Source: Heteronotia binoei (lineage: Eukaryota). From it: DNA of 64,000 nt. Positions within the stretch are counted from its first letter, which is position 1. Each line of letters begins with the position of its first letter. Shown piece after piece: positions 1-64,000 of the stretch. Location of the stretch: the NCBI RefSeq assembly GCF_032191835.1, contig NC_083232.1, forward strand, positions 104,966,001 through 105,030,000. Direction: 5' to 3'. The notes below the pieces were generated by a model. The model was not told the origin of the DNA and made no database searches. It saw only the letters and a list, made by a program, of their open reading frames with translations. The translations under genes were made by a program, and so were the position numbers.

Positions 1-2
1 GG

Positions 3-3726: not shown

Positions 3727-3737
3727 GGGGGGCAGTA

Positions 3738-4221
3738 TGTCAGCTTGTGTTCAATTGCCTGCTATTGATACTAACCATGTTGCCTATACTGTTTGTTTGT
3801 TTAAAGACTAACCCCATTGCACCTCTGTAGAATGTTAGACATGTGGGGGGGGGGGCGAAGGAGGAAGGGAGGGGAGCCCTGGGCGCCAAGAGCAATAAAT
3901 GGCTGGCAGAACAGAGAGAGACAACGATGCCGTTTCCCAGGCCCCCCCAAGGCCACCGGCCGAAGGGAGGAGTACGAATGGTTCAGGAAGATAGATAACA
4001 GACGTGTGAAGCTCGTACCTCAGTGAGAGAAAAGTAACTTTGTTTTGAGAATGATTTAAAGCCCCCTTTGATGTACTCCCATATATGCCCCAAGCTAGTC
4101 AATGTATGTTATCACTCTCAAAGCTCTTCAACTGCAGAGACATTGTATTTCTAATAAAGAAACTTATTTCACAAAGAAAGAGTTCTATTATTCTGGAATT
4201 CCTATGAACCCTGCGGTGACA
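3738..4221 (+). repeat. 3' LTR of element A (484 bp), preceded by polypurine tract 3725-3732
   Basis: TGTCAGC...GGTGACA termini. TATA-like ATATAT at 4081, AATAAA at 4153. Homologous to the element B LTRs. Confidence 0.92.
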
Positions 4222-10499: not shown

Positions 10500-10715
10500 G
10501 TCTGAAGCAGCAGAACAAAGTAGGAGTCCAGTAGCACCTTTAAGACCAACAAAGTTTTATTCAGAATGGAAGCTTTCTTATGCATGCAGACTTCTTCAGA
10601 CGAGGGGTACCACTGTACCCTATCTCCCCGTCTAAAGAAGTGTGCATGCATACACAAGCTTACATTCTGGATAAAACTTTGTTGGTCTTAAAGGTGCTAC
10701 TGGACTCCTACTTCG
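10500..10715. repeat. Inverted pair of Penelope-like pseudo-LTR fragments with hammerhead-like cores
   Basis: Arms GAGTCCAGTAGCACCTTTAAGACCAACAAAGTTTTATTC and its reverse complement form an imperfect palindrome. Each arm has a CTGAAGA...GAAAGCTT-like motif. Family assignment is from recall of reptile Penelope repeats. Confidence 0.6.
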
Positions 10716-11092
10716 TTACACAGGCATTTGTTTGCATCATGCAGAAACAGAAGCCACGAAATGTCTTTTCTGAAGGTGAACGAAAACAAACACAACACAC
10801 AGATTCCTTCATTAGGGAAGATATCCTTTTAGAAACAAAAAGTCAGCCGCAGAATCCCATCTGCAGGACAGAGATGCTTCCTTTTTTGCCAGTTCCTTTC
10901 CCATGGCATCCTCCAGTGAGGTCCCTGCTGAATGTAAAGGAGCCATATGGCCTCACAGCAACTGGGCGGCCTTGGGGCTCTTGGGCAAGATCCCCTCCAG
11001 CAGATCCTGACCTCCGTCCCTTGGCTGCCTTGGGGAGCCACTGCAACTGCAGCAGGTGAAAGACAGAGGCAGACTTCCCCACACGCGGAGAC

Positions 11093-19979: not shown

Positions 19980-22900
19980 GGAGGGAAGCCCCTCTCATGG
20001 ATTGCCGCCTTGATGTGGTGAGAGGGCTTGAGCAGTTCAGTGAGGCTGTGGGCTATGCCATGCAGGGGTACCCAAGATAAACAGGCCACAGCTGAGAACC
20101 CAGACAAAATGCGATCCACTGGAGAAGGAAATGGCAACCCACTCCAGTATCCTTGCCAAGAAAACCCCATGGACAGTAACAAAAGGATAAAAGATATGGC
20201 GCTGGAAGATGAGCCCCTCAGGTCAGAAGGTGCCCAATATGCTACTGGGGAAGAGCGGAGGGCAAGTCCAAGTAACTACAGAAAGTGAAGTGGCTGGGCC
20301 AAAGCCAAAAGGACACTCAGCTGTGGATGTGTCTGATAGTGAAAGAACAGTCTGAAACTGAAAAGAACAATACTGCATTGAAACATGGAATGTAAGATCT
20401 ATGAATCAAGGTAAGCTGGATGTAGTCAAACGAGATGGCAAGTCTGAACATCGACATCTTGGGAATCAGCAAACTAAAATGGACGAGAATGGGTGAATTT
20501 AACTCAGAGGATCACTACATCTATTATTGTGGGCAAGAGTCCCGTAGAAGAAATGGTGTGGCCTTTATAGTGAATGAGAGTGAGGAACGCAGTAATGGGA
20601 TACAATCTCAAAAATGACAGAATGATCTTGGTCTATATCCAAGGCAAACTATTCAATATCACAGTAATCGAAGTCTATGCCCCAACCACTGATGCAGAAG
20701 AGCCTGAAATGGACCAGTTCTATGAAGATCTACAACACCTTCTAGAATTAACACCAAAAAAAGATCTCATCATAGGGGACTGGAATGCCAAAGTGGGAAG
20801 TCAAAAGGTAACCGGAACAACTGACAAGTTTGGCCTTGAAGAACAAAATGAAACCGGGCAAAGGCTAATAGAGTTCTGTCAAGAGAACAAGCTGGTCATG
20901 GCGAATACCCTCTTCCAACAACCTAAAAGGCGACTCTATACATAGACATCGCCTGATGGGCAAATCAGACTGATTATATGCTCTGCAGTCAAAGATGGAG
21001 AAGCGCCTTACAGTCTGCAAAAACAAGACCTGGAGCTGACTGCAGCTCAGATCATAAGAACATAAGAGAAGCCATGTTGGTTCAGGCCAATGGCCCATCC
21101 AGTCCAACACTCTGTGTCACACAGTGGCAAAAAATTTTATATATACACACACACTGTGGCTAATAGCCACTGATGGACCTCTGCTCCATATTTTTATCTA
21201 AACCCCTCTTGAAGGTGGCTATGCTTGTGGCCGCCACCACCTCCTGTGGCAGTGAATTCCACATGTTAATCACCCTTTGGGTGAAGAAGTACTTCTTTTT
21301 ATCCGTTTTAACCTGTCTGCTCAGCAATTTCATCGAATGCCCACGAGTTCTTGTATTGTGAGAAAGGGAGAAAAGTACTTCTTTCTCTACTTTCTCCATC
21401 CCATGCATTATCTTGTAAACCTCTATCATGTCACGCCGCAGTCGACGTTTCTCCAAGCTAAAGAGTCCCAAGCGTTTCAACCTTTCTTCATAGGGAAAGT
21501 GTTCCAGCCCTTTAATCATTCTAGTTGCCCTTTTCTGGACTTTCTCCAATGCTATAATATCCTTTTTGAGGTGTGGCGACCAGAACTGCACACAGTACTC
21601 CAAATGAGACCGCACTATCGATTTATACAGGGGCATTATGATACTGGCTGATTTGTTTTCAATTCCCTTCCTAATAATTCCCAGCATGGCGTTGGCCTTT
21701 TTTATTGCAAACGCACAGTGTCTTGACATTTTCAGTGAGTTATCTACCACGACCCCGAGATCTCTCTCTTGGTCAGTCTCTGCCAGTTCACACCCCATCA
21801 ACTTGTATTGGTAGCTGGGATTCTTGGCCTCAATGTGCATTACTTTGCACTTGGCCACATTGAACCGCATCTGCCACGTTGACACCCACTCACCCAGCCT
21901 CAACAGATCCTTTTGGAGTTCCTCACAATCCTCTCTGGTTCTCACCACCCTGAACAATTTAGTGTCATCCGCAAACTTGGCCACTTCACTGCTCACTCCC
22001 AACTCTAAATCATTTATGAACAAGTTATAGAGCATGGGACCCAGTACCGAGCCCTGCGGCACCCCACTGCTTACCGTCCTCCACTGTGAAGACTACCCAT
22101 TTATACTCACTCTCTGCTTCCTATTACTCAGCCAGTTTTTGATCCACAAGAGGACATGTCCTTTTACTCCATGACTCTCAAGCTTTCTAAGGAGCCTTTG
22201 ATGAGGAACTTTATCAAAAGCTTTCTGGAAGTCAAGGTAAACAACATCTATCGGGTCACCTTTGTCCACATGTTTGTTTACCCCCTCAAAGAACTGTAAC
22301 AGGTTTGTGAGGCAAGATCTTCCCTTGCAGAACCCATGCTGAGTCTTCCTCAATAACCCGTGTTCATCAATGTGCCTACTCATTCTGTCCTTAATAATGG
22401 TTTCTTCCAACTTTCCCGGTATTGAAGTCAGCCTGACAGGCCTGTAATTTCCCGGATCTCCTCTGGAACCCTTTTTAAAGATGGGGGTGACATTTACTAC
22501 CTTCCAGTCCTCAGGAACGGAGGCAGATTTCAATGAAAGATTACAGATTTTTGTTAGAAGATCCACAAGTTCAACTTTGAGTTCTTTCAGAATTCTCGGA
22601 TGTATGCCATCCGGACCTGGTGACTTATTAGTTTTTAATTTGTCTATCAGTTGTAGGACCTCCTCTTTTGTCACCTCAATCTGACTCAGGTCTTTAAACA
22701 GCCCTTCCAAAATTAGTGGTTCTGGGGCGGGCAAAAAGTTCTCGTCTTCCACAGTGAAGACAGAGGCAAAAAATTCATTCAGCTTCTCAGCCATTTCCCT
22801 ATCCTCCTTCAGTAATCCTTTTACCCCATGGTCATCCAAGGGCTGCACTGCTTCCATGGCTGGTTTCCTACTTCTAATATATTTGAGATCATGAGGTATG

Positions 22901-29952: not shown

Positions 29953-30765
29953 AGAAACTGGAACTCTGTTATGGAGATGCCTATTAAGCTCCTTGGGTGG
30001 AGGGTTGGGTGATGGTTTATGTATGTATTTGTGTATTTATATATATGTATAACCTAGTCCTGTATAAGTAATTGATAAATAAAGTGTTGTTTTGTATTAA
30101 AAAAAAAGACATTTGTCAGGTACTAGAGAATTGATCAGCAGTCTTCTATAGACGCTGCCTTTGGGAGACGGGTCCTCCAACAGGTGTTGGATGAGTGACC
30201 TCCTGCTGTACCCTCCCAACCGATCTTTGTTCTATAACCACTTTGGATACCTTCTCCCACTGAAGGAGAATGAAATATTGGACTTACCAGAAGGTTTCTT
30301 CTCTTCAGTGGGGCGAAGGCTTTAGTTACTTGCCACGCTGAAATGTGACTATTTCAACTGTAGTTACTGTTTTTGGCATGTTCAATATTAAAAGTTGTTG
30401 TAGTTTTTTCCATATTCTGAGTGGTGAGAAGTTTTGGGCGAGGCTATTTTATGTCTGGAAGAACACCCTCTCTAGGTCCTGGAAGGCACACAGCAAAATT
30501 TGTATAGCCCTTCCTGGCATGAGAGGAGGCCTGACTTGACTGATCTGGATGCCTTCCCCCCACTGAAGAGAAGAAACCTTCCGGTAAGTCCAATGTTTTA
30601 TTATGCAACACCATTAAGTCAATAATTAGTGATCACAGCAATAACCATGGGGGGAAATACTCTATATGTTACTAAAAATGATTATACGTTCCGCACATCA
30701 TACAATACAATGTAAAGGGATAAGAAATAAAGCCCAAATATATGGAGATGTCCAGAAGTCCTCTG

Positions 30766-31416
30766 TGTCAAGCTCTGTTCATTGATACTATTGCTGAATG
30801 TTGATTACTAACCAGATTGATTAATGCACATATATGCTCACTAACCTATGACAGTAGAATAGTAGAAGGGGGGCCAAGTAGGGAATAGCCAAAGAGTAGC
30901 TTCCCAGGAATATCAAAGGTTGTGAGGCAGTCTTTGAAGTGGATACTGCCTGGCAGATTCTCACCTCCCCCCTAGAGGCAGCAAGGACATTGCCGCTGGG
31001 GAAATGTAACTACCAACTGAAAGGGATAAGGTGGAGCCGTGTGAAAAGTCTTACATGCAAAAGCAGCCTTTGTTTTGGGAATTGGGGGGGTAGATGCAAT
31101 TGCTTTAGAATGCATGTAGAATGTTAAATACCAATGATTCGAATTGCTTGCCATCAGTTCCAATACCTATCATGCTGAAGTAACTTTGGAGTATACAATA
31201 AATGCAACTTTGTTTCAAATAACAAGTCTGCTTATTTGGGAACTTCAATGAACCTTTGCTGACATTTTGGAACTGATCCCCATGAAGGTTTATCAGCGCT
31301 GGTAACTTTGCAGCAGATGGCTGAAAAGGCACCCAGCGACCGAGAGCTTTCAGATCCAATCGACATCCCAACGTCTCCGGCGCGGCACTGGGAACTTCAA
31401 TGAACCTTCGCTGACA
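30766..31416 (+). mobile_element. Internally deleted Gypsy element D: 5' LTR (30766-31264), PBS, 24 gag codons, last 28 bp of 3' LTR
   Basis: TSD CTCTG at 30761-30765 and 31417-31421. LTR end TGGGAACTTCAATGAACCTT(T/C)GCTGACA occurs twice (31237-31264 and 31389-31416). MAEKAP start homologous to elements B and C. Confidence 0.88.
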
Positions 31417-32167
31417 CTCTGGGTGGGTCCAGACCACACCAAGACGCTGGCCCTTTATCCTTCGTTTTGAAATTTAATCTTCCACTGATGGACTATATGA
31501 TAAATAATACTAAATCCTTAAACATTATTTTACAGGCAGGGGAATCACACCCGCCAAGAAAACTGACCTGAACTCTTATCATTGACAGCACAACTTATTC
31601 CATAGGATGCCGAATGATGAACAATATGCAATTCAACAAGCACTTCCTCTGTCCTGTTAAAGTCTCATTTGGCAAATAAAATGTTACTTTTTAAAAAAAA
31701 TTTAACTTTATTGAGAATAAACAAACGATCTTAACAAAAGAGTTAAACATTCATCCGGGTAATTCTGAGTAATCCCTATACATGAAACAAAAAACAGAAA
31801 ACAGAGTGAAAGTGGATTCAAACAACACGTTAATTATCACTTTTAAATAAAGTAGATTATTATCATAACATAAATTCCTCTTCAACCTAATTCCCCCCCC
31901 CCCTTCTTTCCCTTCTGTCTTCCTTTCAATCCATCTGTACAATTTCTTCCATTTATTACTTGCTACTGATTTCGCCTGCCCTTTCAGAAGTGCTGAAAGT
32001 ATATCTGCCTCAGCGGCAAAAAGCACTTTTCCCACCAATTCCTCCAAATTTGGGCAATTCCCTTTCTTCCAATATTTGGCTATTAAAATTCTAGCAGCAG
32101 TGATAGTATAAATCACCAAATGTTCATCTTCTTTTGGTATCTCCTTACCTTTTGGTATCTCCTTACC

Positions 32168-42296: not shown

Positions 42297-43192
42297 CCAA
42301 CCAAATTGAAATGTTGTATAAGAGATGTATCCGTTTGTGCACCCCTAATTTTAGTCCGATGCTCAAAGATCTAACAAAATTAAGGTCTGGAAATTTGATC
42401 TTATCTGTCTCCCCTACGTGAGGACATGAAGAGCAGTGGCCACATTTCCTATGTCCTTTAATCTCCTCCTCCCTTCTATCTTTGCACAAAATGTCTGAGC
42501 GAATAAGTCTCAAGAATTTGAGTTGTATGTGTCAAGCAATGTGAATCTTTCTTTAATAATATAATGCTAATAGTATGATGCTAACTGAAGGTATTTGTAA
42601 AGCTCCATGAATGTTACTAACCATGAACTGAACTGGGCACATCAAAGCAGGAAATAGCCAGAGTGTAGTTCACGTCTCTTTTGCCTCTCTCGCTTTCACT
42701 AACTAATGCAGGAATTTACTCTTTGAAGATAAGCGCCTCCAGGGACAGGTTCTCAGGCCTGGTCCCAGGAAAAGAAACCATAGGGGAGATAAGTTGCCAT
42801 GTGAAGATTCACACATGAATACAGCATTGTTTAGAGAATGTAGCTTTGTTTAGGAAATCTTTGATGTGCCACCTTTAAGTATGCCCTCCACTGTTACTAT
42901 GTATCAGTTCCAATACCTAGCTCAATAGAAGCATCTTGGATTATCAATAAATCAAACTTTGTTTCAAATCAAAGACTGATTTCTTTGAGATCTAATTGCT
43001 TGACAGTATGAAAACCTATTACAAGTAGGAGAGAACACCCTGGAAGGTCTTGGACATTTTGCCAGTGTTTAAGAACTATAGATTTAATTGATTCAGCTAA
43101 AGATGTAAAGTCAAAAGTCCAATGTGTATTATTAGATGTATCTCCTTATAAAGAAGAAAAGCACCATCCCTAAACCTCTTCTTCAAACGTAT
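42297..43192 (-). mobile_element. Penelope-like element remnant (RT linker / GIY-YIG region), split by a solo LTR
   Basis: Degraded peptides KHWQNVQDLPGC, RLIRSDI...KGHRKCGHCSSC (CxxC motif before GIY-YIG) and HRTKIR...LIQHF. Confidence 0.65.
42530..43005 (+). mobile_element. Solo LTR (476 bp), same group as element D
   Basis: TGTCAAGCAAT...ATTGCTTGACA termini, TSD GTATG, AATAAA, and the same ATCAGTTCCAA 11-mer (42903-42913). Confidence 0.92.
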
Positions 43193-45355
43193 CATAAAAA
43201 CATAAGATAAGCCATGTTGGATCAGGCCAATGGCCCATCCAGTCCAACACTTTGTGTCACACAGTGGCCAAAAAACCCAAGTGTCATCAAGAGGTCCACC
43301 AGTGAGGCCAGAAGCACAAGAATACAGAGCATCACTGCCCCAAACAGAGAGTTCCAATGATAAGCTGTGGCTAATAGCCACTGATGGACCTCTGCTCCAT
43401 ATGCTTATCCATTCCCCTCTTGAAGCTGTATATGCTTGTAGCCACCACCACCTCCTGTGGCAGTGAATTCCACATGTTAATCACTCTTTGGGTGAAGAAG
43501 TACTTCCATTTATCCATTTTAACCCGACTCCTCAGCAATTTCATTGAATTCCCACAAGTTCTCGTATTGTGAGAAAGGGAGAAAAGGACTTCTTTCTCTA
43601 CCTTCTCTATCCCATGCATAATCTTGTAAACCTCTATCATGTCACCCCTCAGTTGATGTTTCTCCAAGCTAAAAAGCCCCAAGTGTTTTAACCTTTTTTC
43701 ATAGGCAAAGTGTTCTAACTCTTTAATAATTCTAGTTGCCCTTTTCTGCACTTTTTCCAATGCTATATCTTTTTTGAGGTGCAGTGACCAGAATTGTACA
43801 CAGCACTCCAAATGAGGCTGCACCATCGGTTTATACAGGGGCGTTATGATACTGGCTGATTTGAACATATGAAGCTGCCTTATACTGAATCAGACCCTTG
43901 GTCCATCAAAGTCAGTATTGTCTTCTCAGACTGGCAGTGGCTCTCCAGGGTCTCAAGCTGAGGTTTTTCACACCATTTTGCCTGGATCCTTTTTTGAAGA
44001 TGCCGGGGATTGAACCTGGGACCTTCTGCTTCCCAAGCAGATGCTCTACCACTGAGCCACCATCCCTCCCCTTTTGTTTTCAATTCCCTTCCTAATAATT
44101 CCCAGCATGTTGTTGACCTTTTTTATTGCAATTGCACATTGTCTTGACATTTTCAGTGAGTTATCTACCACAGTGAACCTCATCTGCCACATTGACCCAG
44201 CCTTGACAGATCCCTTTGGAGTGCCTCACAATCCTCTCTGGTTCTCACCACCCTGAACAATTTAGTGTCATCTGCAAGCTTAGCCACCTCACTGCTTACT
44301 CCCAACTCTAAGTCATTAATGAACAAGTTAAAAAGCATTGGACCCAGTACTGAGCCCTGTGGCACCTCACTGCTTACCATCTTCCACTGCGAAAATTGCC
44401 CATTTATACTCACTCTCTTCTTATTATTAATTAGCCAGTTTTTGATCCACAAGAGGACCTGTCCTTTTACTCCATGACTCTAGAGCTTACTAAGGAGCCT
44501 TTGATGAGGAACTTTATCAAAAGCTTTCTGGAAATCAAAGTAAACAACATCTATTGGTTCCCTCTTGTCCACATGTTTGTTCACCCCCCTCGAACTCTTA
44601 ACAGGTTAGTGAGATAAGATCTTCCCTTACAGAACCCATGCTGAGTCTTCCTCAATAACTCGTGTTCATCAATGTGCCTACTCATTCTGCCCTTGATAAT
44701 GGTTTCTACCAACTTTCCTGGTATTGAAGTCAGACTGACTGGCCTGTAATTTCACGGATCGCCTCTAGAACCCTTTTTAAAGATGGGAGTGATATTTGCT
44801 ACCTTCCAGTCCTCAGGAACAGAGACAGATTTCCATGAAAGATTACATATTTTTGTCAGGTGATCACAAGTTCACCTTTGAGTTCTTTCAGAACTCTTGG
44901 ATGTATGCCATCCAGGCCTGGTGACTTATTAGTTTTTAATTTATCCATCAGTTGTAGACCCTCCACTCTCGTCACCTCAATCTGGCTCAGGTCCTTCAAC
45001 ACCCCTTCCAAAATTAGCGGTTCTGGAGTGGGCAAACGCTTCTCATCTGCCACAGTGAAGACGGAGGCAAAAATGTATTCAGCTTCTCAGCCATTTCCCT
45101 ATCCTCCTTCAGTAATCCTTTTACCCCTTTGTCATCCAAGGGCCCCACTGCCTCCCTGGCTGGTTTCCTGCTTCTAATATATTTGAAGAAATTTTTATTG
45201 TTGGTCTTTATGTTTTTTGCAATATGCTCCTCATAGTCCCTTTTTGCCTGCCTGATCACAGTTTTGCATTTGATTTGCCACAGCCTGTGTTCCCTTTTAT
45301 TAACCTCACTTGGACTAGCTTTCCATTGCTTAAAGGAATCCTTCTTACATTTTAC
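43193..45355 (-). mobile_element. 5'-truncated, degraded CR1 LINE
   Basis: Multiple CR1 ORF2 pieces homologous to 21056-22885, plus a CR1 3' UTR and tail. Confidence 0.92.
43864..44070 (-). mobile_element. tRNA-derived SINE with CR1-like tail, inside CR1
   Basis: GGTGGCTCAGTGGTAGAGC...GGTTCAATCCCC (A and B boxes), tail CTTCATATGTT. Confidence 0.85.
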
Positions 45356-47195: not shown

Positions 47196-48265
47196 GGTGG
47201 CTCAGTGGTAGAGCATCTGCTTGTGAGGAACTCCAAAGGGACCTGTTGAGGCTGGGTGAGTGGGCATCAACATGGCAGATACAGTTCAGTGTGGCCAAGT
47301 GCAAAGTAATGCACATTGGGGCCAAGAATCCCAGCTACAAATACAAGTTGATGGGGTGTGAACTGGCAGAGACTGACCAAGAGAAAGATCTTGGGGTCGT
47401 GGTAGATAACTCACTGAAAATGTCAAGACAGTGTGCGTTTGCAATAAAAAAGGCCAACGCCATGCTGGGAATTATTAGGAAGGGAATTGAAAACAAATCA
47501 GCCAGTATCATAATGCCCCTGTATAAATAGATGGTGCGGTCTCATTTGGAGTACTGTGTGCAGTTCTGGTCGCTGCACCTCAAAAAGGATATTATAGCAT
47601 TGGAGAAAGTCCAGAAAAGGGCAACTAGAATGATTAAAGGGCTGGAACACTTTCCCTATGAAGAAAGGTTGAAACGCTTGGGACTCTTTAGCATGGAGAA
47701 ATGTCAACTGCAGGTTTACAAGATAATGCATGGGATGGAGAAAGTAGAGAAAGAGGTACTCTTCTCCCTTTCTCACAATACAAGAACTCGTGGGCATTCT
47801 ATGAAATTGCTGAGCAGACAGGTTAAAACAGATAAAAAGAAGTACTTCTTCACCCAAAGGGTGATTAACATGTGGAATTCACTGCCACAGGAGGTGGTGG
47901 CGGCCACAAGCATGGCCACCTTCAAAAGGGGTTTAGATAAAAATATGGAGCAGAGGTCCATCAGTGGCTATTAGTCAAAGTGTGTGTATATATATACATA
48001 AATTTTTTTTGGCCACTGTGTGACACAGAGTGTTGGACTGGATGGGCCATTGGCCTGATCCAACATGGCTTCTCTTATGTTCTTAAGCAGAAGGTCCCAG
48101 GTTCAATCCCCGGCATCTCCAACTAAAAAGGGTCCAGGCAAATAGGTGTGAAAAACCTCAGCTTGAGACCCTGGAGAGCCGCTGTCAGTCTGAGTAGACA
48201 AGACTGACTTTGATGGACTGAGGGTCTGATTCAGTATAAGGCACCTTCATATGTTCATATGTTCA
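47196..48265 (+). mobile_element. tRNA-derived SINE split in its anticodon arm by a CR1 insertion
   Basis: GGTGGCTCAGTGGTAGAGCATCTGCTT at 47196-47222 resumes AAGCAGAAGGTCCCAGGTTCAATCCCC at 48085. Same family as 43864. Confidence 0.85.
47223..48084 (+). mobile_element. 5'-truncated CR1 LINE (0.86 kb)
   Basis: ORF2 C-terminus essentially the same as the CR1 at 21056, with a TTCTTATGTTCTT tail. Confidence 0.93.
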
Positions 48266-48400
48266 CCTAGGCTGTCCCCCCCCCCCCCCATATACACTTG
48301 TGAACAGAGACTTCCTTTGAAAATATAAAAACTAGAAGGAACTAAACTTGGGATACAGATACATGGTGATAAGATAATATAGCATTATACTGCTGTAGCA

Positions 48401-48536
48401 CAGGGGTGGCCAATGATAGCTCTCCAGATGTTTTCTGTCAACAACTCCCATCAGCCCCAGCCATTGGCCATGCTGGCTGAGGCTGATGGGAGTTATAGGC
48501 AAAAAACATCTGGAGAGCTACTGTTGGCCACCCTTG
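48401..48536. mobile_element. hAT-type MITE (136 bp)
   Basis: Same family as 4820. TSD CTGTAGCA/CTATAGCA. Confidence 0.85.
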
Positions 48537-48950
48537 CTATAGCACAAGAGGAGCAATTGCTGTTTTATTCTCCAGATGTGGCAGGAAAGAATATTCAACA
48601 AATGGTGTGTGGCGCAAATGCCATATGGAAGGAAACTGGCGCTGGGAGGGCTGCCTGTGCCTTTTGCTGGAAAATGTAGACCATGTCTTCCATGCAACAT
48701 GCTCATGTGCTTAGAATCATAGAGTTGGAAGGGACCTCCCAGGTCATCTATTTCTGCACAATGCAGGAAACTCACAAATACCTCCCCCTAAATTCACAAA
48801 TTGGACTGCACTTTTCTTATCACGAGTAAAGCAAGAATGTGGCAAGAAATCATGTGGATGTTCCCTTCCCCCCACAAAAAAAGCACTCCAGTTTGGAAGC
48901 AAAGTTGGAGAAATACCTGGCTGGTGGAAACTCACCAGTGATCTGCTGGC

Positions 48951-49826
48951 TGTCAAGTCTGTCTATAACTCTGGCTCAGTCAAAGAGCATTCTGGGTAGA
49001 ACCAAAGTATAATCAAATGCTGCTAGCTCATACTCTCCCTACCCCTCCTTTCCTGTAGCGTGTAGCTTTGCTTTGAAATGGAAAGATGTGAAAGTCTTAT
49101 CTGTGCCTTCTCAGGCCTGGCTCTCGGAAGGGAGTCAGGAGCCCACTACAATCAAGGCCATGCATGTCAAGTCTGATGTTTCAATAACGAGTCCTTGTTG
49201 ATAAAAGTTTCAAGTTTATTGTAACATGTTGCAAGACTGGTCGACAGAGATTGAGAGAACTGGCGAGCATATACAGAGGGCAAACATTTAAGGTACAGAT
49301 CAGAGGAATTCCTACGGGAGGGGGTATTCCTAAGCGAGCACATTCACACATCGTTGTTACTTTATCATTCTCAGGCCTGGCTGGCCTTGGGCACTTCCTT
49401 GGTACCCATTATCTCTGAGAAGGCACAGTAATCTTTTTCTCATAGCTAGTTTCAGAGCTTTGCTACATAACAAAAGGAAAGAGGGGGGTAGGGAGAGGTT
49501 GAGCTAGCAGCACTTGAATACAGTATGGCTTTTACCCAGGAGTCATTTCCTGAACCAAAGTTTGAACCAGAGTTTAAATCTATACTAGTAAAGCATAAAT
49601 CGGACTTGACAATGCAAGCCTGAGAACGAATTGGTAACATCAATGTGTGAATGTTCCCTGCATAATCCTCCCCCCTTAGGAATTCCTTTGAAGTGTCCCT
49701 TATATGCAGTGTATCTACAGTATATTCTTTAGTCTTTTTAATGCTGGCCTAGCCTCAAGTATCAGTATCAATAAAATAGCTTCTTTGTATCCACAACGAC
49801 TCGTTATTGAATCTGCCGACTTGACA
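48951..49826 (+). mobile_element. Solo LTR (424 bp net) carrying a nested LTR
   Basis: TGTCAAGTC...GACTTGACA termini, TSD CTGGC. Confidence 0.9.
49165..49611 (-). mobile_element. Solo LTR (447 bp) nested in opposite orientation
   Basis: TGTCAAGTC...GACTTGACA termini, TSD ATGCA. Related to the host LTR. AATAAA on the minus strand. Confidence 0.9.
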
Positions 49827-51085: not shown

Positions 51086-51759
51086 CCAAAGTGGAGTCCA
51101 GGGATGGCCAACAGAAGGGCTGAGGGCAGGAGCCAGCCCGTCCAGGGCTCTTGTCCATCCCATGAGCAGCTGAGGCGAGGGAAGGAACAGAAGGCTGCTG
51201 GGGGGGTGGAGTGGGGGGGAGCCACTCCTATGGCGGTTTCAGCGCAGTGGGACAACCTCCTCTGTGTCAGCGTAGTGTTCATTGAGGTTCCAGAACGAAA
51301 GAACTCTTTCTTCAGAAATAAGTTTCTTTATTGGATACACAATGTTTCTACTGGAGAAGACCATTGAAAGTGATAACATACATTGGATGGGTGCTATCAT
51401 ATATTGGGGTACATCAAAGGCAAGGCCCTTTAAATCACTTGTTAAAACAAAAGCTGCTTTCTCCCTCAGAGGTGTTTGATTCACACGCTTGCTATCTGTC
51501 TTTCCTGAGTCTACCCACACTCCCCCTTTCATTTGGCAGCCTTGCCTGGCCTGGGAAATGGCGCGGTGTCTCTGTGTACTGTTAGCCATTTATTACCCCT
51601 GGCGCCCAAAGCCTCCCTCCCTTCCACGGCCTCCCTCTGACATACCTTGCATTCTACTACAGGGCAAAGAGGTTAGTCTTGAACAAATAAACAGTATAGG
51701 CAATATGGTTAGTATCGATAGGAAGCGATTGAACACAAGCTGACATACTGCCCCCCCCC

Positions 51760-54700
51760 CAAGCTCTTGCTCGGGGCTTGTCTGGGTGCAGTAGGTAAAA
51801 TTGCTTAAGCAGTTTAGGAGCATTGAGGTCTGGGGCTTTGACCCATTCATCGCAGCTGGGCGGAAAGTAGCGCCAGCGTACTAAATATTGTAGGACCCCC
51901 CGGTGCACTCTAGAATCGAGAATCTCCTTCACTTCGTGGTGCTTCTGGCCTGGACCATCGTGGGTTCTGGTTCGGGGCCCCGAGGGTGCCACTTTGACCC
52001 ACCCGGATCTCGACGGATAAGACTGCAATGGAAAACAGGATGTATTTTACTAAACAGTTTGGGCAAGTCCAATTCAACAGTCACTTTATTGATCACCCGT
52101 TTGATCTTGAAGGGGCCGAGGAACCGGTAGGCTAGCTTCCGAGATGTCTGGGGAAGCGGAAGATTTTTGGTTGATAAGAACACAGTCTCTCCGACCTTAA
52201 AATCCCACCCCGGGCTGTGTTTCTTGTCGAATTGGGCTTTATAGTCTCTTTTGGCCTCTTCCAGGTTCTCCTGGATGACTTTCCAGGAGCTCTCTAATGA
52301 TTTCCACCATTGCTGGCATTCTGGAGAGATAGGGGGGGTGCTTCCGCCCGGGAGCGTTGGGAAAGGCTTCCCCTCGTACCCGTGCACAGCCTGAAACGGG
52401 GAGACCTTTATTGAGCCATGCAGGCTGTTGTTGTAGCTGTATTCTGCAAAGGGTAACAGCTCTACCCAGTTGGTTTGCTGAAAGTTCACATAGCACCGGA
52501 GGTACTGTTCCAGAAGCCCGTTCACCCGCTCACTCTGCTCGTCCGTCTGCGGGTGGTAGGCAGAACTTAGTCCCTGTTCCATTCCTAATAGTTTGCAGAA
52601 CTCCCGCCAGAAGTTGGCAACGAACTGTGGCCCGCGGTCACTAATGACCTTATCGGGGAACGAGTGGATCCGGGCCACGTGCACAAAGAACAGATGGGCT
52701 AACTCTTTGGCGGTGGGGAGTTTTTTGCAGGGGATGAAGTGGGCTTGTTTGGAAAATGTGTCCACCACTACAAGAATCACTGTCCGCCCTTTCGAGGGTG
52801 GTAGCTCCACGATAAAATCCATTGAAATCACCGACCAGGGCCGCTCTGCCGAGGGAAGCGGTTGGAGCAGCCCGGGCACCTTCCCTCCCCTCCGTTTGGC
52901 CATTAAGCATGTTGGACACGTTTGTACAAATTCAGAAATGTCCTTTTTCATGTGGGGCCACCAGAACTGCCTGTGCACCATGTGCAGGGTTTTCATGTAG
53001 CCATAGTGGCCGGCCAGTTTGCTGGTGTGGCAGTGTTGTAGCACTTCCACCCGGAGTGACTTCGGGACATAAAATTTCCCATCATGGAACCAGAAGCCCC
53101 CGTCCCCTCTCACCAACCCCTCCGGGCGGTCTTTCCCTTCCGCCTCCGCCTCAGAGATCAGCTTGCTCCCCCCCCACGGGTGTCGCGGGGGCTTCGCTGC
53201 CTGAGAACGGGTTTGGACTGCGCCCGTCACTGCCTCGGGGGGGATGAGAGAGTCTATGACTTCCTCGCGCTCACTCTCGTGCTGCGGGAGCCGAGAGAGC
53301 GCGTCAGCCAAGAAATTCTTCGACCCGGGTATGTGCCGGAGGGTGAAGTCGAATTTGGCGAAAAACCCGGCCCACCGTATTTGTTTGCCGGTTAGTTTTT
53401 GGCGCCCCGTGAGCGCTTCTAGGTTTTTGTGGTCAGTCCAGATCTCAAAAGGAACCCTAACCCCCTCCAACCAGGATCGCCATGTTTTCAAGGCGAAGGT
53501 GACGGCGTAGGCTTCCTTGTCCCACACCGACCAGTTCCTTTGCTCGCCCGAGAATTTCTTGGAAATGTAGGCACAGGGTCTTAGGCAGCCCCCCTCGTCC
53601 TTCTGTATCAGTATGGCTCCTACGGCCGTGTCGGAGGCGTCGCATTGAACCACGAAGGGCTTGAGCTCATTCGGGTGCACTAGCATGGGCTCGCTCGTGA
53701 AGAGCCGTTTTAAAGTCTCAAATGCTTCTTGGCACTGGCTAGTCCAGTGGAGCTTCGCCCCAGGTTTTTTCGCTTCGGGCCCCTTCCCCTTGGTTTGCAA
53801 AAGGTTGGGGAGGGGCAGGGCCACCTTGGCGAACCCCTGAATGAACGTTCTGTAGAAATTTGCGAACCCGAGAAATGATTGGAGCTGTCTATGTGTCCTC
53901 GGGGGTTCCCACTCTAACACTGCTTGGATTTTAGCCGGGTCCATGGCCAGGCTCCTCCCGGACACCCGGAAGCCTAGGTAGTCTAATTCTTCCTTGTGGA
54001 ACTCACATTTGGACAATTTGGCGTATAGTTTGTTCTCATACAGGGTGGTTAGTACCTCGCGGACTAGTTTGATGTGGGAGGGCATGTCTTTCGAGTAAAT
54101 AATGATGTCATCCAGGTACACCACCACCCCCTTGTACAAGTATTTCCGAAGGACCTCGTTGATAAAGTTCATAAAGACTCCGGGGGCCCCTTGCAGCCCG
54201 AACGGCATCACCAGATACTCAAACTGCCCCATCGGCGTGTTGAACGCCGTCTTCCATTCATCCCCCTCCTTGATCCTAACTCTAAAGTAGGCGTCCCGTA
54301 GGTCTAACTTGGTAAATATGGACCCCTCCGAGACGCTGCTCAGCAAGTCTTTGATGAGGGGGATGGGGTAGGCATTGGACATCGAAATCCCGTTAATCCC
54401 GCGAAAATCTGTGCAAAGTCTAAGACTTCCATCCTTTTTCTTGCGGAATAGGACGGGGGCCGCGTGGGGGGCCGTCGCTGGGCGGATGAACCCCTGACGG
54501 AGGTTTTTGTCGAGGAACTTTCGCAATTCCTCCTTTTCCGCCCAGCCCATTGAATACAACTGGGCTTTTGGAAGCGGCTGCCCTGGGATGAGCTCTATAG
54601 CGCAGTCGGTGGCCCGATGGGGCGGTAGCTCATCCGCCTCGATTTCACTAAAAGCCCCCTTCAGGTCTCGGTACTCTCTCGGGATCGTTCTCACTTCCTC

Positions 54701-55230
54701 TATAGTCACGCAAATCTTTTCGTTTTTGGGGGGAGGTTGGGGTCCCCAGGACTCTCGCCATAAGTGGAAGGTACACCGCCGGTCCAGGAAGTCAATAGTG
54801 TGCTCCCCCCACTGGATGTCCAGCTGGTGCCTAGCTAGCCACCCCACTCCTAGCACAATATCAAACGAGCAGGAAGGCGCGATCACAAATACTTCTGGGT
54901 CCCAATGGTCCTCTACCCCCATCAGTATCTCCTGCGTTCTGTCGACGCAGGGTTCCCCTTTCATTCGTGTCCCGCCAACTGCTCGAACTCAAGGGGCTAG
55001 GGTAGGCGCTCGCGCCCAATTCCTAACATGTCCACAAACCGCTGGGTGATTAGCTCCCGCGTGCACCCCGAGTCTATGAGCGCTCGAGCATGTACAAAGC
55101 GCTTTAACTCCACATTTAATAAAGTCAGTGGGATGAACATCAGTTCCCCCGAGATTCTCACCCGTAATGGTGCCGCTTTCTCCGGGACCTGCCGCTGGGC
55201 ACCCTCTAGTGCAGGTCGTCCTCGTTTCCC
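51760..55230 (-). pseudogene. pol of element B, with a stop at about 54998 and frameshifts at about 54975 and 51950
   Basis: A 1011-aa open segment (54964-51929) closely matches element A Pol. The chromodomain lies in a shifted frame. Confidence 0.92.
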
Positions 55231-56682
55231 GATGGCTCGGCCTCCCAGGTGTCATCCCCAAGCTCCTCCAGCATTATAGAATCCTCGTCAAGCACCATCG
55301 ACAGGGCGGTGCTGCTGCGGCTCGACTCCTTCGGCTTGCTGGGTTTCTTGGTGTTGCCGCTCGGCCCTTTCGTGGCGGGGGTGCTGGATCTCGCCCGGTC
55401 GGGGCAGTTGGCGGCTAGGTGGCTCGGGTCCCCGCATTGGTAGCACTTGCGGGGCCCCGGGGTGGTCTTGAGGCTTGCCCCTCCTCCCGCTTTTTTGGGC
55501 TCCGCTTTCGCTGCCGGCCGCCCGTCCCGGCTGGAGCGCGGTTGGAGCCCCTGGCGTTGGATCGCCACCTCCTTCATGTTGTTTTCGATCTCCCCCGCCA
55601 GCTGGATCCAGCCCACCAGGGTGTCGGGGCGGACCTGCCCCAGCGCCCGGTCCAGGATGCCCGAGTTGAGCCCTTTCTTGTATGCCCGGATCTTCATGGC
55701 CTCACTCCAGCCCCTTATTTTGCGGCTGTGGTTTCGGAACTCTAGGGAGTACTCTCGGATCGACTTCCCCCCTTGGCGCAGCCCCTCGAGGGCCGCTATG
55801 GCTACGGTTTCCCTTAGGGGGTCTTCGAATTGGGACAGGAGGGCTTGCAGGAAGCCCGCCACGGTGGCCACTTCCGGCCCGTTTGCCTCGAAGAGGGTCA
55901 CGTACCACAGCTGGGCTTCGCCCTCCAGTTTCGACCCCAGGTAGGCTACTCGGCCGCGCTCGTCGTGGAAGGACGCCCCCAGTAGTGCATGTAGGTATTT
56001 GCCTGGATGATGAAGTATTCCACCTTGTCTGGGCTGCCGTCGAACGTGACGAGCAGCTCTCGGGTCTTTACCCGGGGTGCCGGGGCTTGGGGGGCGCCCG
56101 GCGCCGTGGGCGCTGCCGGCACAGCCGGAACCACCGGCGCTGCTGGGATGGCTGGCGCGGGGGTTGTTGCGGGATCGGGGCCGCCGCTCCTCCGGCGCCC
56201 GCGATGGCGCGGTCCACTTGCTTCTGCACCTCCTTTAGTATTAGAGTCATGGTGAGACTCATCTCCCGGCGGAGGTCGCAGCCCAGGATCTCGACCTCCC
56301 GCTGGAGTTCGTCCATGGTGGCGGCTTTCGGGGAGGAGGCTCGCGATTCCTCGTCCTCACCATCTCGGGAGTCACAGCTGTCCCTCCTCCGGCTTGGCCC
56401 CGGACCTTCCTCGGGCTCTCCCCTTCTTTGGGGTCCGTCCGTTGGCTCGGGCGAGCCAGGTGGTGCCTCCGGGTCCCCGGGGTTGCGGAGGAGGTTGGCG
56501 TGGCGTTGCACGGCTTCTTCCATTAGGGTGGTGGAGGTGCGGTGCTTCCACTTCTGTGGGGTGATGAAGAGCACTTGGCTGCTCACCTTCCGTGGCTTGC
56601 GTTTCTCGGTAACGTACCAAGCCGGGGACCCTGGCAGCTCTGGTATGCAGGGCTCTCGGTCGTCTGGTGCCTCTGTAGCCAT
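55206..56682 (-). pseudogene. gag of element B, two 1-nt frameshifts (about 56160 and 55978)
   Basis: MATEAP...ELLVTFDGSPDKVEYFIIQANTYM...QFEDPLRE...CYQCGDPSHLAANC. Restoring one base in each 5-nt run gives a continuous ORF. Confidence 0.9.
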
Positions 56683-57574
56683 TCGCTAGAAGTAACCTTC
56701 GCCGATAAGCCCCCTCGTTAGGGATCACTTTCAAAATGTCAGCGTAGTGTTCATTGAGGTTCCAGAACGAAAGAACTCTTTCTTCAGAAATAAGTTTCTT
56801 TATTGGATACACAATGTTTCTACTGGAGAAGACCATTGAAAGTGATAACATACATTGGATGGGTGCTATCATATATTGGGGTACATCAAAGGCAGGGCCC
56901 TTTAAATCACTTGTTAAAACAAAAGCTGCTTTCTCCCTCAGAGGTGTTTGATTCACACGCTTGCTATCTGTCTTTCCTGAGTCTACCCACACTCCCCCTT
57001 TCACTTGGAGGTCTTGCCTGGCCTGGGAAACGGCGCGGTGTCTCTGTGTACTGTTAGCCGTTTATTACCCCTGGCGCCCAAAGCCTCCCTCCCTTCCACG
57101 GCCTCCCTCTGACATACCTTGCATTCTACTACAGGGCAAAGAGGTTAGTCTTGAACAAATAAACAGTATAGGCAATATGGTTAGTATCGATAGGAAGCAA
57201 TTGAACACAAGCTGACACTCTGCAGGAGTGAAGCAGAGCCCTTTCCCCTCAGTGGCAGCCTCACTGGCAAGGGAGCAGCCACGGCAGCCACATGCTTCCC
57301 GGCTCGGGCTTCCAAGGCAATTTCGGAGGCCTCTCCACTTAGCCTGCAGCTCCAAGGAGGCTGTTCTGGATGGCTGGGGGGATCTGTGCTTGCATGGGGA
57401 GTGGGGGGGCAGATGATCCTCAGGTAGGGGCTGCTGGTGGCCAGCACTGCTGCTGTGTTCACACCCCCAACTGTGGAACTGTGCTTTGGCCCATGGGGGA
57501 GGCATTCTTTGGCAGCTTCTTCCACACATTGGGGTCTAATACTGCCATTGAGCACATGATTCCTCCCCTGCGGA

Positions 57575-60278
57575 CAACCCAGCACCTTCACCATAGGTGG
57601 ATGCCATCACAGGGTGATGATGCTGGCGATCGCCAGTCATGCTGTTTACTGGGTGGCCTGGGGTCTCTGCGACCTGTGGAGGGAGACTTGTGCACACCAT
57701 GTTCAGTCCCGCATCACATGATCCCGTGGTCTTTGGCCTGGGGCCTCTGCACCTGTGGAGGGAGACTTGTTCACGCCATGCCCAGGCCCCCATCACATCA
57801 TCCCGTGGTCTTTGGCCTGGGGCCTCTGCCACATGTGGAGGGAGCCCTGTGCACCCTATGCCCACTTCCCCATCACAACATCCCATGGTCTTTGGTCTGA
57901 GGCCTCTGCCACTGGTGGAAGGAGATTGGTTCATGCCATGCCCTGCCCATCATCACATCATCCCGTGGACTTTCGCTTGGGGCCTCTGCCACATGTAGAG
58001 GGAGCCTTGTGCATGCCATGCCCAGTCCCCCATCACATCATCCTGTGGTCTTTGGCCTGGGGCCTCTTCCACATCTGGAGGGAGCCTTGTGTACGCCATG
58101 CCCACCCCCCCATCACATCATCCTGTGGTCTTTTGCCAGGGGCCTCTGCCACCTGTGAAGGGAGCTTCTGAACGCCATGCTCAGTCCTGCATCACATGAT
58201 CCTGTGCTTTTGGCTTGGTGCCTTTGGAGATGTGGAGGAGACTTGTGCACACCATGCCCAATCCCCCACCACATGATCCTGTGGTCTTTGGCCTGGGGTT
58301 TCTGCCACCTGTGGAAGCAACCTTGTGCACGCCATACCAAGTCCTGCATCACATGATCCCGTGGTCTTTGGCCTGGGTCTCTGCCACCTGTAGAGGGAGC
58401 CTTGTGAATGCCATGCCCAGTTCCCCATCACATCATTGGCCTGAGGCCTCTGCCACCTGTGGAGGAAGCCTTGTGCACGCCATGCCCTGTCCATCATCAC
58501 ATCATCCCGTGGTCTTTCACCTGCGGCCTCTGCCACATGTAGAGGGAGCCTTGTGCACACCATGCCCAGTCCCCCATCATATGATCCCATGGTCTTTGGC
58601 CTGGGGTCTCTGCCACCTGTGGAAGGAACCTTGTGCATGCCATACCAAGTCCTACATCACATAATCCCGTGTTCTTTGGCCTGGGTCTCTGCCACCTGTG
58701 GAGGGAGCCTTGGTACGCCATCTCCAGTCCCCATCACATCATCCCGGGGTCTTTGGCCCGGGGTCTCTGCAACATATGGAGGGAGCCTTCTGTACCCCAT
58801 GTCCAGTCCCCATCACATCATCCCGAGGTCTTTGGTCTGGGGTCTCTGCCACATGTGGATGGAGCCTTGTGCATGCCATGCCCAGTACCACATCACATCA
58901 TCCCATAATCTTTGGCCTGAGGCCTCTGCCACCTGTGGAGGCAGTTTATGAACGCCATGCCCAGTCCTGCATCACATGATCCCGTGCTTTTGGCATGGTG
59001 CCTTGTGCACGTCATGCCCAGTACCACATCACATCATCCCATAGTCTTTGGTCTGGGGCCACTGCCACCTGTGCAGGGAACCTTGTGTCTTTGGTCTGGG
59101 GCCACTGCCACCTGTGTCCAGTCCGCATCACATGATCCCCTGGTCTTTGGCCTGGGGACTCTGCCACCTGTGGAGGGAGCCTTGTGTACGGCATTTCCAG
59201 TCTGCATGACATCATCCCCTGGTCTTTGGCCCGGGGCCTCTGCCACCAGTGCAGGGAGACTTGTGTACGCCATGCCTAATCCCCCATCACATGATCCCAT
59301 GGTCTTTGACCTGGGGTATCTGTCACCTGTGGAGGGACCTTGTGCATACGATGCCCTGTCCCCATAACATGATCCCGTTGTCTTTGGCTTGAGGCCTCTG
59401 CCGCCTGTGGAGGGAGCCTTGTGCACACCATTCCAGTCCCGCATCACATGATCCTGTGGTCTTTGGCCTGGGGCGTCTGCCACATGTGGAGGGAGCCTTG
59501 TGCATGCCATGCCCAGTACCACATCACATCATCCCATAGTCTTTGGCCTGAGGCCTCTGCCACCTGTGGAGGGAGTTTATGAACGCCATGCCCAGTCCTG
59601 CATCACATGATCCCGTGCTTTTGGCATGGTGCCTTGTGCACGTCATGCCCAGTACCACATCACATCATCCCATAGTCTTTGGTCTGGGGCCACTGCCACC
59701 TGTGCAGGGAACCTTGTGTACGCCATGTCCAGTCCGCATCACATGATCCCCTGGTCTTTGGCCTGGGGACTCTGCCACCTGTGGAGGGAGCCTTGTGAAT
59801 GCCATGCCCAGTCTCCCATCACATCATCCTGTGCTCTTTGGCTTGCGGCCTCTGCTACCTGTGGAGGGAGCCTTGTGTACGGCATTTCCAGTCTGCATGA
59901 CATCATCCCCTGGTCTTTGGCCCGGGGCCTCTGCCACCAGTGCAGGGAGACTTGTGTACGCCATGCCTAATCCCCCATCACATGATCCCATGGTCTTTGA
60001 CCTGGGGTATCTGTCACCTGTGGAGGGACCTTGTGCATACGATGCCCTGTCCCCATAACAGGGCACACCATGCAAGGTCCCCCATCACATGATCCCGTAG
60101 TCTTTGGTCTGGGGCCACTGGCACCTGTAGAGGGAGACTTGTGCACACCATGCCCAGTCCTCCATCACATCATCCCGTGGTCTTTGGCCTGGGTCTCTGC
60201 CACCTGTGGAGAGAGCCTTGTGCACGCCATGCCCATTACCACATCACATTATCCCGTGGTCTTTGGCCTGGGTCTCTG
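57575..60278. repeat. Tandem array of about 80-bp units (about 34 copies)
   Basis: The GTCTTTGG anchor recurs at 57729, 57808, 57888, 57968, 58048 and 58128. Consensus CATGCCCAGTCCCCCATCACATCATCCCGTGGTCTTTGGCCTGGGGCCTCTGCCACCTGTGGAGGGAGCCTTGTGCACGC. Confidence 0.95.
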
Positions 60279-61039
60279 TGTCAAGGTAGATTAATAATGG
60301 CTTAAGCCTGGGGGAATCCGGCCTAAGCAATAGGCCTGGTTAAAATCATAATGAATCCACTGCTGCTAATGTTTCACCTTAGTTGCTTCCCTTCCTCCTT
60401 TTCTTATTTTGATTTGTAACTGGTGTGAAGGAACTAGTTGGCGCCTTCTCAGGGCCTGAGGTGGGAGGAAGCCTTGCATAACAACCCAAGGACACTGGCT
60501 AGCTAGCGACTGAGAAAGTATCTAGTAGTGACGTGTGAATGTTTCCTCCTGTAACCCCCCCCCTGTAGGAATGTCTTTGAAGTGTATCTTAAAACCCATG
60601 TATCAATGTATTGGTTTCATTCTTAGCAAGCTAGAGGCTTGCGCCAGAGTACCGATTATCAATAAATGTAGTCTTAGTATCAACTTTGACTCATTCTTGA
60701 ATCCGTCGGCTTGACATTTTGCTAAGAATCAACTTTGAAGCTTAACCACCCTGGCCACTTTGTAGCTAAATGGCTGAAAAGATACCAGAAGGCAGTGAGC
60801 TTCCCTACACCGAAGAAGGGCCATCTATTCCCTGCCACATCTTGGATGCACGGAGAGTAGCAGCATCTCCTCCACAGTTCCAGCAGCTGCTCATCATCCC
60901 GAGGCAGTGGCAGCCCCAGACCTCCACCAGTACCATGGATGAGGCCCCGGCTAGGCATGAAGCCATCCTGACCTGGCACATGCAAAGGATGCGAATGGCG
61001 AATGCGGAAGGGTCCAATCTGGGACCCATGGAGCCGGAG

Positions 61040-61910
61040 TGTCAAGTCTGCTTTAACTTTGGTCAGGCCTGCACCCAATCTTTGGTTCAGGAGAGAAGCC
61101 ATACTGTATTCCAATGCTGTTAGCTTGAACTCTCCTCACCCCCCTCCTTTCCTTTGTTATGTAGTTTGCTTTGAAATGGGAATATGTGAAAGAGTTTATC
61201 GGGCCTTCTCAGGCTGGACATCGGGGGAGGTTGGAGCCAAAAGACGCTCAAGGCCAAAGCAGGCCTGAGAAAGAAATTGTAACATCAATGTGTGAATGTG
61301 CCCTGCATAGTACCCCTCCCTCAAGAATCCCTTTGAAGTATACCTTATATGATTGCATTCTACTGTATGATCTTTAGTCTTTCAATCTCACTGTGTCAAG
61401 ACATGGAACTTCAAGTAAAGACGGATCATAGTGTTGTAACAATTAATCCATTTATTGAGAACAAATAGTCAGCAGAGAGGCAGATTGCGTTTGATACCGG
61501 CCCAAGGTTGAGGCCAGCCTTTTCTACATTTCTAAAAGCAGGAAACAATACAACCCTTTTCACACCCCCAGAGACAGCCGGGTCTTCCCAGGGCTTTATC
61601 TCTTTCTCAGAGGAAGAATCCTTGAAGATGTGGACTTCAAAGCCGCAGATGGCTTTTCGGCTGGGCATGAGATTTTACTCCTTGCAGTTACAATATGCTT
61701 GGGGAAGGGCACTTGCTACAGTTCTCAGGGTTAGTAAAGCAGAGTTCATATTAAGGTACATCATGGCGTTAGTCATGTCAAGCATTTCTAATCTACAATT
61801 CAGTTTCAGTAAGTTACACGTTTGACACACTGTAGTCGAGAACCATGATATCAATAAACTAGCTACTTTGTTATCAGCAAAGACTCGTTATTGAATCTGC
61901 CGACTTGACA
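61040..61910 (+). mobile_element. Solo LTR (same family as 48951) inserted in the gag of element C
   Basis: TSD CGGAG (61035-61039 and 61911-61915). Last 29 bp identical to the 48951-49826 LTR end. Confidence 0.92.
61394..61827 (-). mobile_element. Solo LTR (434 bp) nested in opposite orientation
   Basis: TGTCAA...TTGACA termini, TSD CACTG (61389-61393 and 61828-61832). Confidence 0.88.
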
Positions 61911-64000
61911 CGGAGGAGACTGATACTATCGTGGTGGTTCCAATACACGAGGAGTGCCCGGAGCCAGACGAGGGAGAACTGGGTGCAGCAGCTCCTAAAG
62001 ATGAGGAGGACGAAACAGCTAGGGAGTTTCAAGCCATGGTCTGCAAAGAAGTGGAGAGCGTGGTCAAGGGCCTGAAGATGGAGATGCAGGCCATGACCAA
62101 TCGAATGGCGGGAGAGATCAGCAGAGAGATCTCTCACTCTCTAGGGCTGCCTGGGCCCAGGAGGATTACTCACCCCCCCCCCCCAATCTGCCAGCCACCA
62201 GCACCAGCGATTCCCATGCCAGCGGCACTGGCCGTGGCCCCAGCGCCGCCCACAGTGCCCTGGCCGGCGGCCCCCCCTCCTGCTCCTCGTGATGGAGGGA
62301 GAGGAAGGGAGCTCGATGCTACCTTCGACGGGGACCCGGAGGAGGTGGAATACTTCACAATCCAGGCGAACAGCTATATGCATTATTGGGGGAATACCTT
62401 CCCGGATGAGTTCAGCTGAGTGGATTTTCTGGGGTCGAAGCTGAGGGGGGCGGCCAAAAGGTGGTACGTGAGCCTGTACGAAGCCATGAGCCCAGAACTG
62501 GACTATGTAGCAATGTTCCTACAGGCTCTGTTGGCCCAGTATGAAGACCCCCTCCAGGAGACCCAGGTGTTGGCAGCCCTGCACGACATGCAACAGGGGC
62601 AGAAGTCAATCTGGGAGTATGCTGCGGACTTCCGAGCCAATGCAGCCAAGGTGCGAGGGTGGAGTGAGCTGATGAAAATCGAGCACTTCACCCGGGGGCT
62701 GAATGTGGGCATATTGGATTGGGCCCTCACCCAAGCCCGACCTACCACGTTGGTAGGTTGGATCCAGTTAGCAGGTGAGGTTGAGACCAATATGAAATGT
62801 GTCGCCATGCAACGCCAGCAGCAAAGCGGAAAAGGGGGACGGGACCCGAAAGCAACCCCAAAAGCAGAGGTGAAGAAACCGGCAGGGGGTTCCAGTGGGG
62901 GTAAGCCAGCCGGAACCCGCAAGTGCTTTCAGTGTGGAGACCCAGGGCACCTAGCGAGCAGCTGCCCGAACCCGCCGCGAGCACTACCAAGTGCCCCGAA
63001 GCAAAGCACTCCCGTCCTGAAGAAGGCCCCTGACCACCCTAAGGAAGCGGCGAAAGGCAACATGATGGCAATTGAGGAGGCAGAAGAGGAACTGTTCCTG
63101 AGCGATGAGCTGAGCGAGCTGGTCTGGATGGAGGAGCTGTCAGGAAACGAGAACGACCTGCTCTGAAGGGTGCCCACCAGCAGGTCACAGAGGAGCCGGC
63201 ACCAATGAGGGTGAGAGTGACTGGATCACTTTATTTTGTACCAGTGAGACTGTTGAACCCCAAACTAAAGAGATTAATGCAAGTGAGGGCTTTAATTGAC
63301 TCGGGGTGCAACCAGGAATTAATAACACCCTGGCTACCACCCCCCTACCCTGCCCCATACAGTTCGAACAGATGGATGGGTCAGTGATGCGGGGGGAGCC
63401 CTGTGCTTCAGAGACTCAATTTCTGCCAATGGGGATCGAGGAGCATTGGGAGCAGGAGTCATTTGTAATCGCCCCCTCCTGCTCTTACCCAGTAGTGTTG
63501 GGGGTCAGTTGGCCGGCCAGGCATGAACCAGACATTCGGTGGGGGAGGCAAACCACAAGGTTCATAGACCCGCTGTGCAAAGATCACCTATGGAACGTAG
63601 AGTGGGGGCCTCGCCCTCCGCCCTCCACTGAGAGGGTGTGCCTGACACTGGAAGAAGTCCTGGAAATCCCCCAGGCATACCGGGAATTGATGGGGGTGTT
63701 CAGCGAGCAGGGCACCAACGAGCTGCCGCCCCATAGGGACACGGACTGTGCTATCGAGTTAATACCGGGGGAATCGCTCCCCAAAGCCAAATTGTACCCG
63801 ATAGGATGGGCCGAGAAGGCGGAGCTGCGCAAATTTCTGGACAAGAACTTAAAACGGGGGTTTATTAGGCCGGCCTCAGCCCCCCACGTGGCCCCGGTTC
63901 TGTTCCGGAAAAAGAAGGACAGCTCGCTTAGACTTTGCATAGATTTTTGCGGGATAAACGTGATTTCAACCTCCAACGCCTACCCCATCCCCCTCATTAA

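Follow-up and report, generated by a model that had tools for sequence, protein, structure and literature searches.

How does an LTR retrotransposon begin reverse transcription when the sequence just beyond its 5' LTR lacks the TGG with which a tRNA-type primer-binding site (PBS) starts? The window, the whole 64,000-nucleotide stretch of DNA analysed here, holds three elements that raise this question: B, on the minus strand, and C and D, on the plus strand. The original prediction was that each is primed by its own RNA, through an 11-mer in the LTR that is complementary to a site 2 nt past the LTR end.

Chromovirus families in the window

By sequence, all three elements belong to the Ty3/Gypsy chromoviruses, and none has a tRNA-type PBS. 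The layout found is that of Ty3/Gypsy elements: gag capsid and zinc knuckle, then reverse transcriptase (RT), RNase H and integrase in order, between LTRs of the form TG..CA and with a 5-bp duplication of the target (Table 1). The pol frame of B, 1011 aa long, encodes RT, RNase H, the zinc and core domains of integrase and a Tf2-1-like SH3 domain; the capsid and zinc knuckle of this element lie in a frame separate from pol. Pfam Chromo was matched at 3.5e-9 in B, where the domain is out of frame, and at 5e-10 in a fourth element, A (1-4221, plus strand), whose chromodomain is intact. Among proteins of solved structure the best relative is Ty3 Gag-Pol (2e-130); the search of solved structures with Crotalus gag returned no match. 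In the protein databases the nearest entries, Gypsy polyproteins of Anolis and Crotalus, are 50-53% identical, and PF00385 is present in most of the relatives. Close matches also come from fish, frog, a charophyte alga and a fungus, in keeping with the known spread of the Tf1/sushi group.

Table 1. Positions in the window of the LTRs, candidate priming sites and coding regions of elements A to D.
Feature	Position	Strand	Details
B 5' LTR	56737..57217	-	481 nt, TGTCAG...CTGACA; from LTR-LTR local alignment
B proposed self-primer ATCACTTTCAA	56836..56846	-	Predicted first 11 nt of R; exact PBS complement
B TATA-like box AATATATG	56870..56877	-	Starts at -31 from the 11-mer
B AATAAA polyadenylation signal	56799..56804	-	Inside R-U5
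B candidate PBS TTGAAAGTGAT	56724..56734	-	Exact complement of ATCACTTTCAA
B candidate U5/leader stem around PBS	56700..56744	-	CGCTGA 56739-56744 with TCGGCG 56700-56705; RNAalifold on B, D, C
B coding region	51929..56682	-	Three pieces
B start of gag	56068-56682	-	
B capsid and zinc knuckle	55206-55901	-	
B pol	51929-54964	-	RT, RNase H, integrase, SH3
B chromodomain	~51760-51930	-	Out of frame
B polypurine-tract region	51746..51766	-	Run of ten G; adjoins 3' LTR upstream
B 3' LTR	51265..51745	-	Repeats the 11-mer, at 51364-51374
C 5' LTR	60279..60716	+	Proposed self-primer ATTCTTAGCAA at 60619-60629
C candidate PBS TTGCTAAGAAT	60719..60729	+	2 nt (TT) past LTR end 60716
C internal region	60770..64000	+	gag start 60770; pol runs past window end
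C capsid and zinc knuckle	62420-63166	+	
D 5' LTR	30766..31264	+	Proposed self-primer ATCAGTTCCAA at 31153-31163
D candidate PBS TTGGAACTGAT	31267..31277	+	2 nt (TT) past LTR end 31264
D 3' LTR, last 27 nt	31390..31416	+	Joined directly to start of gag
Further D-family LTR, R-U5	42903..43005	+	No PBS after it
A 3' LTR	3738..4221	+	Element A ~84% like B; 5' end of A before window

B and D are real integrations, each bounded by a 5-bp target duplication: CAGAG (57218-57222 and 51260-51264) for B, CTCTG (30761-30765 and 31417-31421) for D. Duplications were judged for these two elements, the 3' end of C being outside the window. The LTRs of B differ at 8 of 481 nt in local alignment. D (30766-31416) is internally deleted: what remains is the 5' LTR, the PBS and some 110 nt of leader plus gag, joined to the LTR remnant. 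The gag of C is split by a nested solo LTR (61040-61910) with its own duplication, CGGAG. In B, C and D alike gag opens with ATGGCT some 40 nt past the PBS, and the leaders can be aligned; the three are related yet distinct families. Since the frames of B are broken and D has lost its interior, the primer sites are relics of past activity.

Further LTRs in the window bear on the position of the 11-mer. Element A carries a homologue of the B primer site, ATCACTCTCAA (4111-4121), that is one letter off B's; its PBS would lie outside the window. The additional D-family LTR has an 11-mer (42903-42913) identical to that of D, the remainder being 79% alike; its likeness to D (31153-31264) sets in precisely with the opening letter of the 11-mer, and the U3 regions have no detectable similarity. 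An unchanged 11-mer beside diverged flanks fits a constrained U3/R boundary. The break in U3 between these two LTRs suggests, for its part, rapid turnover or exchange of U3.

The LTR ending at 61910 was considered as a 5' LTR without a PBS, and hence as a counter-example; this was rejected, for it is a solo LTR, nested in the gag of C and flanked by CGGAG. The LTR ending at 49826 (48951-49826) is a solo LTR too, flanked by CTGGC. Both belong to a family related to C, and the former contains a stretch of about 450 nt without counterpart in the latter.

The window contains other repeats as well. Between B and C (57600-60300) lie about 33 copies of an 80-bp satellite, and the LTR of C begins at the end of this array (60279). 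A family of repeats about 2 kb long is present in three copies 88-97% alike (21051-22886, 43191-45186 and, inverted, 47221-48085), one of which includes a tRNA-Pro-like sequence at 43995-44067, detected by ARAGORN. Hairpin-like inverted repeats at 4815-4960, 48396-48542 and 10514-10717, with arms of 68-92 nt that are about 90% complementary, resemble miniature inverted-repeat elements.

Complementarity between the LTR and the site beyond it

In each of B, C and D the 11-mer, which lies in the 5' LTR about 100-114 nt from its downstream end, is matched by an exact complement (11/11) in the internal region, 2 nt (TT) past the terminal CA. The LTR of B, for instance, terminates in ...GCTGACA (56737), which is followed by the TT spacer (56735-56736) and then by TTGAAAGTGAT. 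The three 11-mers are all different, pairing having been kept through changes in both arms. A chance origin of these matches was rejected: only 0.3% of positions in the window have an 11-mer whose reverse complement sits at most 500 nt upstream, most of them in long hairpins, and since all three of the LTR/internal junctions match, at the same +3 offset, the estimate for coincidence is about 3e-8.

To B, C and D we added six relatives of B pol—three elements from Crotalus adamanteus, one from Pimephales and two from assembled contigs—making a covariation set of nine. All six relatives have a further primer/PBS pair of the same geometry, 10-12 nt long. The LTR 11-mers of the three Crotalus elements, AGGGTAAACTT, AGGGCTGACTT and AGAGCTGGTTT, each have their exact complement 2 nt past the LTR; a relative from an assembled contig has AGTTCCCGCTT, which forms a 12-bp duplex; the Pimephales element has GTCAGATCGTT, with a spacer of 1 nt; and in a relative with a long LTR the pair is 10 nt long and its arms are 691 nt apart. 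The spacer between LTR and PBS is thus 2 nt in eight of the nine elements, and the 5' LTR ends in CA in all except one decayed Crotalus copy, which ends in TA. None of the nine has TGG at the start of its PBS.

Pairing of the Watson-Crick type was found at 98 of 99 cells across the nine elements, with at least two types of pair at each of the 11 positions. When the PBSs were dealt to the wrong elements, the mean number of paired cells was 41.5 and the maximum 77, against the 98 of the true assignment. The median difference between any two of the nine primers is 8 positions, and complementarity ends at nucleotide 11 in most of the elements. RNAalifold recovered the duplex from the three Crotalus leaders, with six of the 11 pairs changed on both sides. 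The duplex also lies within the minimum-energy fold of five of seven short leaders; in the leader of B it is the TTGAAAGTGAT/ATCACTTTCAA duplex that was found there. The coordinates originally given proved exact throughout, as did the pairs named for C and D, and the two accompanying claims, that the PBS covaries with the predicted start site across families and that B has no TGG tRNA-type PBS, were borne out by the set of nine.

The upstream arm has the surroundings expected of a promoter. It begins at a pyrimidine/purine step in all nine elements, and an AT-rich or TATA-like box starts at -31 in seven of them, at -34 in C and at -29 in D. For B, in which TATATG occurs 29 nt upstream of ATCACTTTCAA, the start of transcription is predicted at A 56846, with T/A as the -1/+1 step. 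From this indirect, promoter-like context, together with the likeness to Tf1, we infer that the upstream arm would be the 5' end of the transcript. The single public RNA run in which the element B family was present, a metatranscriptomic run in the form of contigs, covers all bins of B at a likeness of at least 85%; because contigs show no starts, ends or strand, this run supports neither expression nor a start of transcription.

A candidate priming cycle and its alternatives

Taken together, the sequences make it very probable that B, C and D are vertebrate chromoviruses of the Tf1/sushi kind which prime reverse transcription with their own RNA, not with a host tRNA. The transcript would begin in the 5' LTR, about 30 nt beyond the TATA-like box, with the A at the head of the 11-mer; its first 11 nt would then fold back and pair with their complement, located 2 nt beyond the LTR. 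If these elements behave as Tf1 does, the RNase H that they encode would cut after nucleotide 11, and the 3' end so freed would prime minus-strand DNA through U5 and R. In the standard scheme of reverse transcription the 2-nt spacer would give rise to the dinucleotide trimmed by integrase, and plus-strand synthesis would copy the primer back over the PBS, which would be renewed in each cycle. Pairs that are perfect yet specific to a lineage would be the outcome of this renewal and of the co-inheritance, on one RNA, of three sequences: the primer, the 3' LTR copy of it and the PBS.

At primer positions 10-12 the composition is uneven: in eight of the nine elements the two final primer letters are A or T (AA or TT), and in six of nine a T follows the presumed cut. 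This bias may be a cut-site preference of RNase H or merely shared ancestry.

An inverted repeat in a leader might serve another purpose. The duplex could be a structural RNA element, acting in packaging, dimerisation or translation control, with priming left to some other RNA; long-range pairing does, in most of the folds, enclose the entire R-U5 leader, and the priming steps set out above are modelled on Tf1 rather than observed. We nevertheless consider such a role improbable: the downstream arm is at the place of a PBS, 1-2 nt past the CA of the LTR, in nine elements out of nine, no alternative TGG-type PBS is present, and the upstream arm coincides with the predicted start of the transcript, a coincidence for which a purely structural helix would have no need.

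Self-priming of Tf1 requires, according to the openly available papers, a three-duplex "pretzel", and pairing of U5 with the leader just past the PBS had been proposed for the present elements. This part of the prediction held in B and D, where RNAalifold gives a stem of 6 bp; in C the stem is half broken, and a search for its counterpart in the Crotalus elements found none. The energies of leader-versus-loop duplexes, compared with those of shuffled leaders, gave z near -1.5 in B, C and D and of about -1.7 to -1.4 when the relatives designated Ca3 and Pp5 are included with them; in Ca1 and Lg4 the values were close to zero or above it, and only En6 had a strongly negative one. Outside one long-LTR element the scores were weak. 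In most elements the flanking duplexes were no better than the shuffled controls, and they are not conserved across groups. Of the duplexes of the Tf1 pretzel, the modelling makes the central one alone clear in B, C, D and their relatives, the other two being not clearly present.

The diversity of the pairs was originally given a meaning of its own, that of private replication keys: family-specific pairs would have been selected against cross-priming or recombination between co-resident families, several of which, with different pairs, do occur within this one 64-kb window. We find no support for this reading and consider it very unlikely, given that primer and PBS are on the same RNA, so that co-inheritance accounts for the pairs and yields their diversity while nothing points to selection for exclusivity; within families, moreover, the 11-mer is conserved, not diversifying. 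We hold it just as unlikely that diversification of the pairs under selection insulates the reverse transcription of the families, or that a compatibility barrier of this kind drives their splitting.

To the suggestion that fragments of host tRNAs, or small host RNAs of another kind, bind to the PBSs, whose complementarity to the LTR would then be secondary, we give almost no credence: tRNA halves do prime some Copia lineages, and there is a TGG one letter inside the PBS of D, but B and C are without TGG, complementarity stops at 11-12 nt instead of the 18 nt usual for tRNA sites, and the PBSs of the nine elements are all different, every one being complementary to the LTR of its own element at a constant place relative to the promoter, where a limited pool of tRNAs would yield shared ones.

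Relation to known self-primed and tRNA-primed elements

Self-priming by the RNA of B, C and D is the preferred reading. It is well supported, from sequence comparison, that the signal is real and was correctly read as self-priming; it is a feature already known for the clade and calls for no new mechanism. The novelty that the original prediction implied does not survive the literature, which gives self-priming as a feature of the whole Tf1/sushi group, vertebrates included, and describes it as common there from fungi to vertebrates (Butler 2001; Lin and Levin 1997; Neumann 2019).

The value of the finding is in annotation. Pipelines for finding LTRs that seek a tRNA-type PBS miss or mis-score these families, and the primer/PBS rule, which needs no RNA data, locates in each copy both the 5' LTR and the predicted U3/R boundary. 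The finding also shows recent activity of several self-priming chromovirus lineages together in this genome, the LTRs of B having 8 differences in 481 nt.

The closest parallels in priming are Tf1 and Tf2 of Schizosaccharomyces pombe and Tj1, Tosmo1-3 and Tcry1 of other fission yeasts. In these the PBS is complementary to the start of the mRNA made from the same element, as is predicted here, and the two groups have in common a PBS right after the CA of the 5' LTR, a primer of about 11 nt and an integrase chromodomain. In the elements from fungal hosts the pretzel has been shown or drawn, whereas here the central duplex alone is clear. Cleavage by RNase H and priming itself have been demonstrated for Tf1 only.

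Among vertebrates, sushi-ichi of Takifugu and the vertebrate Tf1/sushi group (Butler et al. 2001, J Mol Evol 52:260) are likewise chromoviruses, and later papers report them as self-primed. The published model of the Sushi LTR also applies: the ends of the LTRs described here fit TGTYANR...CNTNACA, and AATAAA is found near the LTR 3' end. They differ from sushi-ichi in residing in a reptile-type host genome, and even their nearest proteins, those of Anolis and Crotalus, are only 50-53% identical. The Tcn1 clade of mosses and club-mosses, which is related to Tf1/sushi, resembles them in its predicted self-priming; its hosts are plants and its relationship to them is distant. With tRNA-primed Ty3/Gypsy elements and retroviruses, finally, B, C and D share the order LTR-PBS-gag-pol, the 2-nt spacer after CA and, upstream of the 3' LTR, a polypurine tract; they depart from them at the PBS, which in the tRNA-primed elements is about 18 nt long, starts with TGG and matches the 3' end of a host tRNA.
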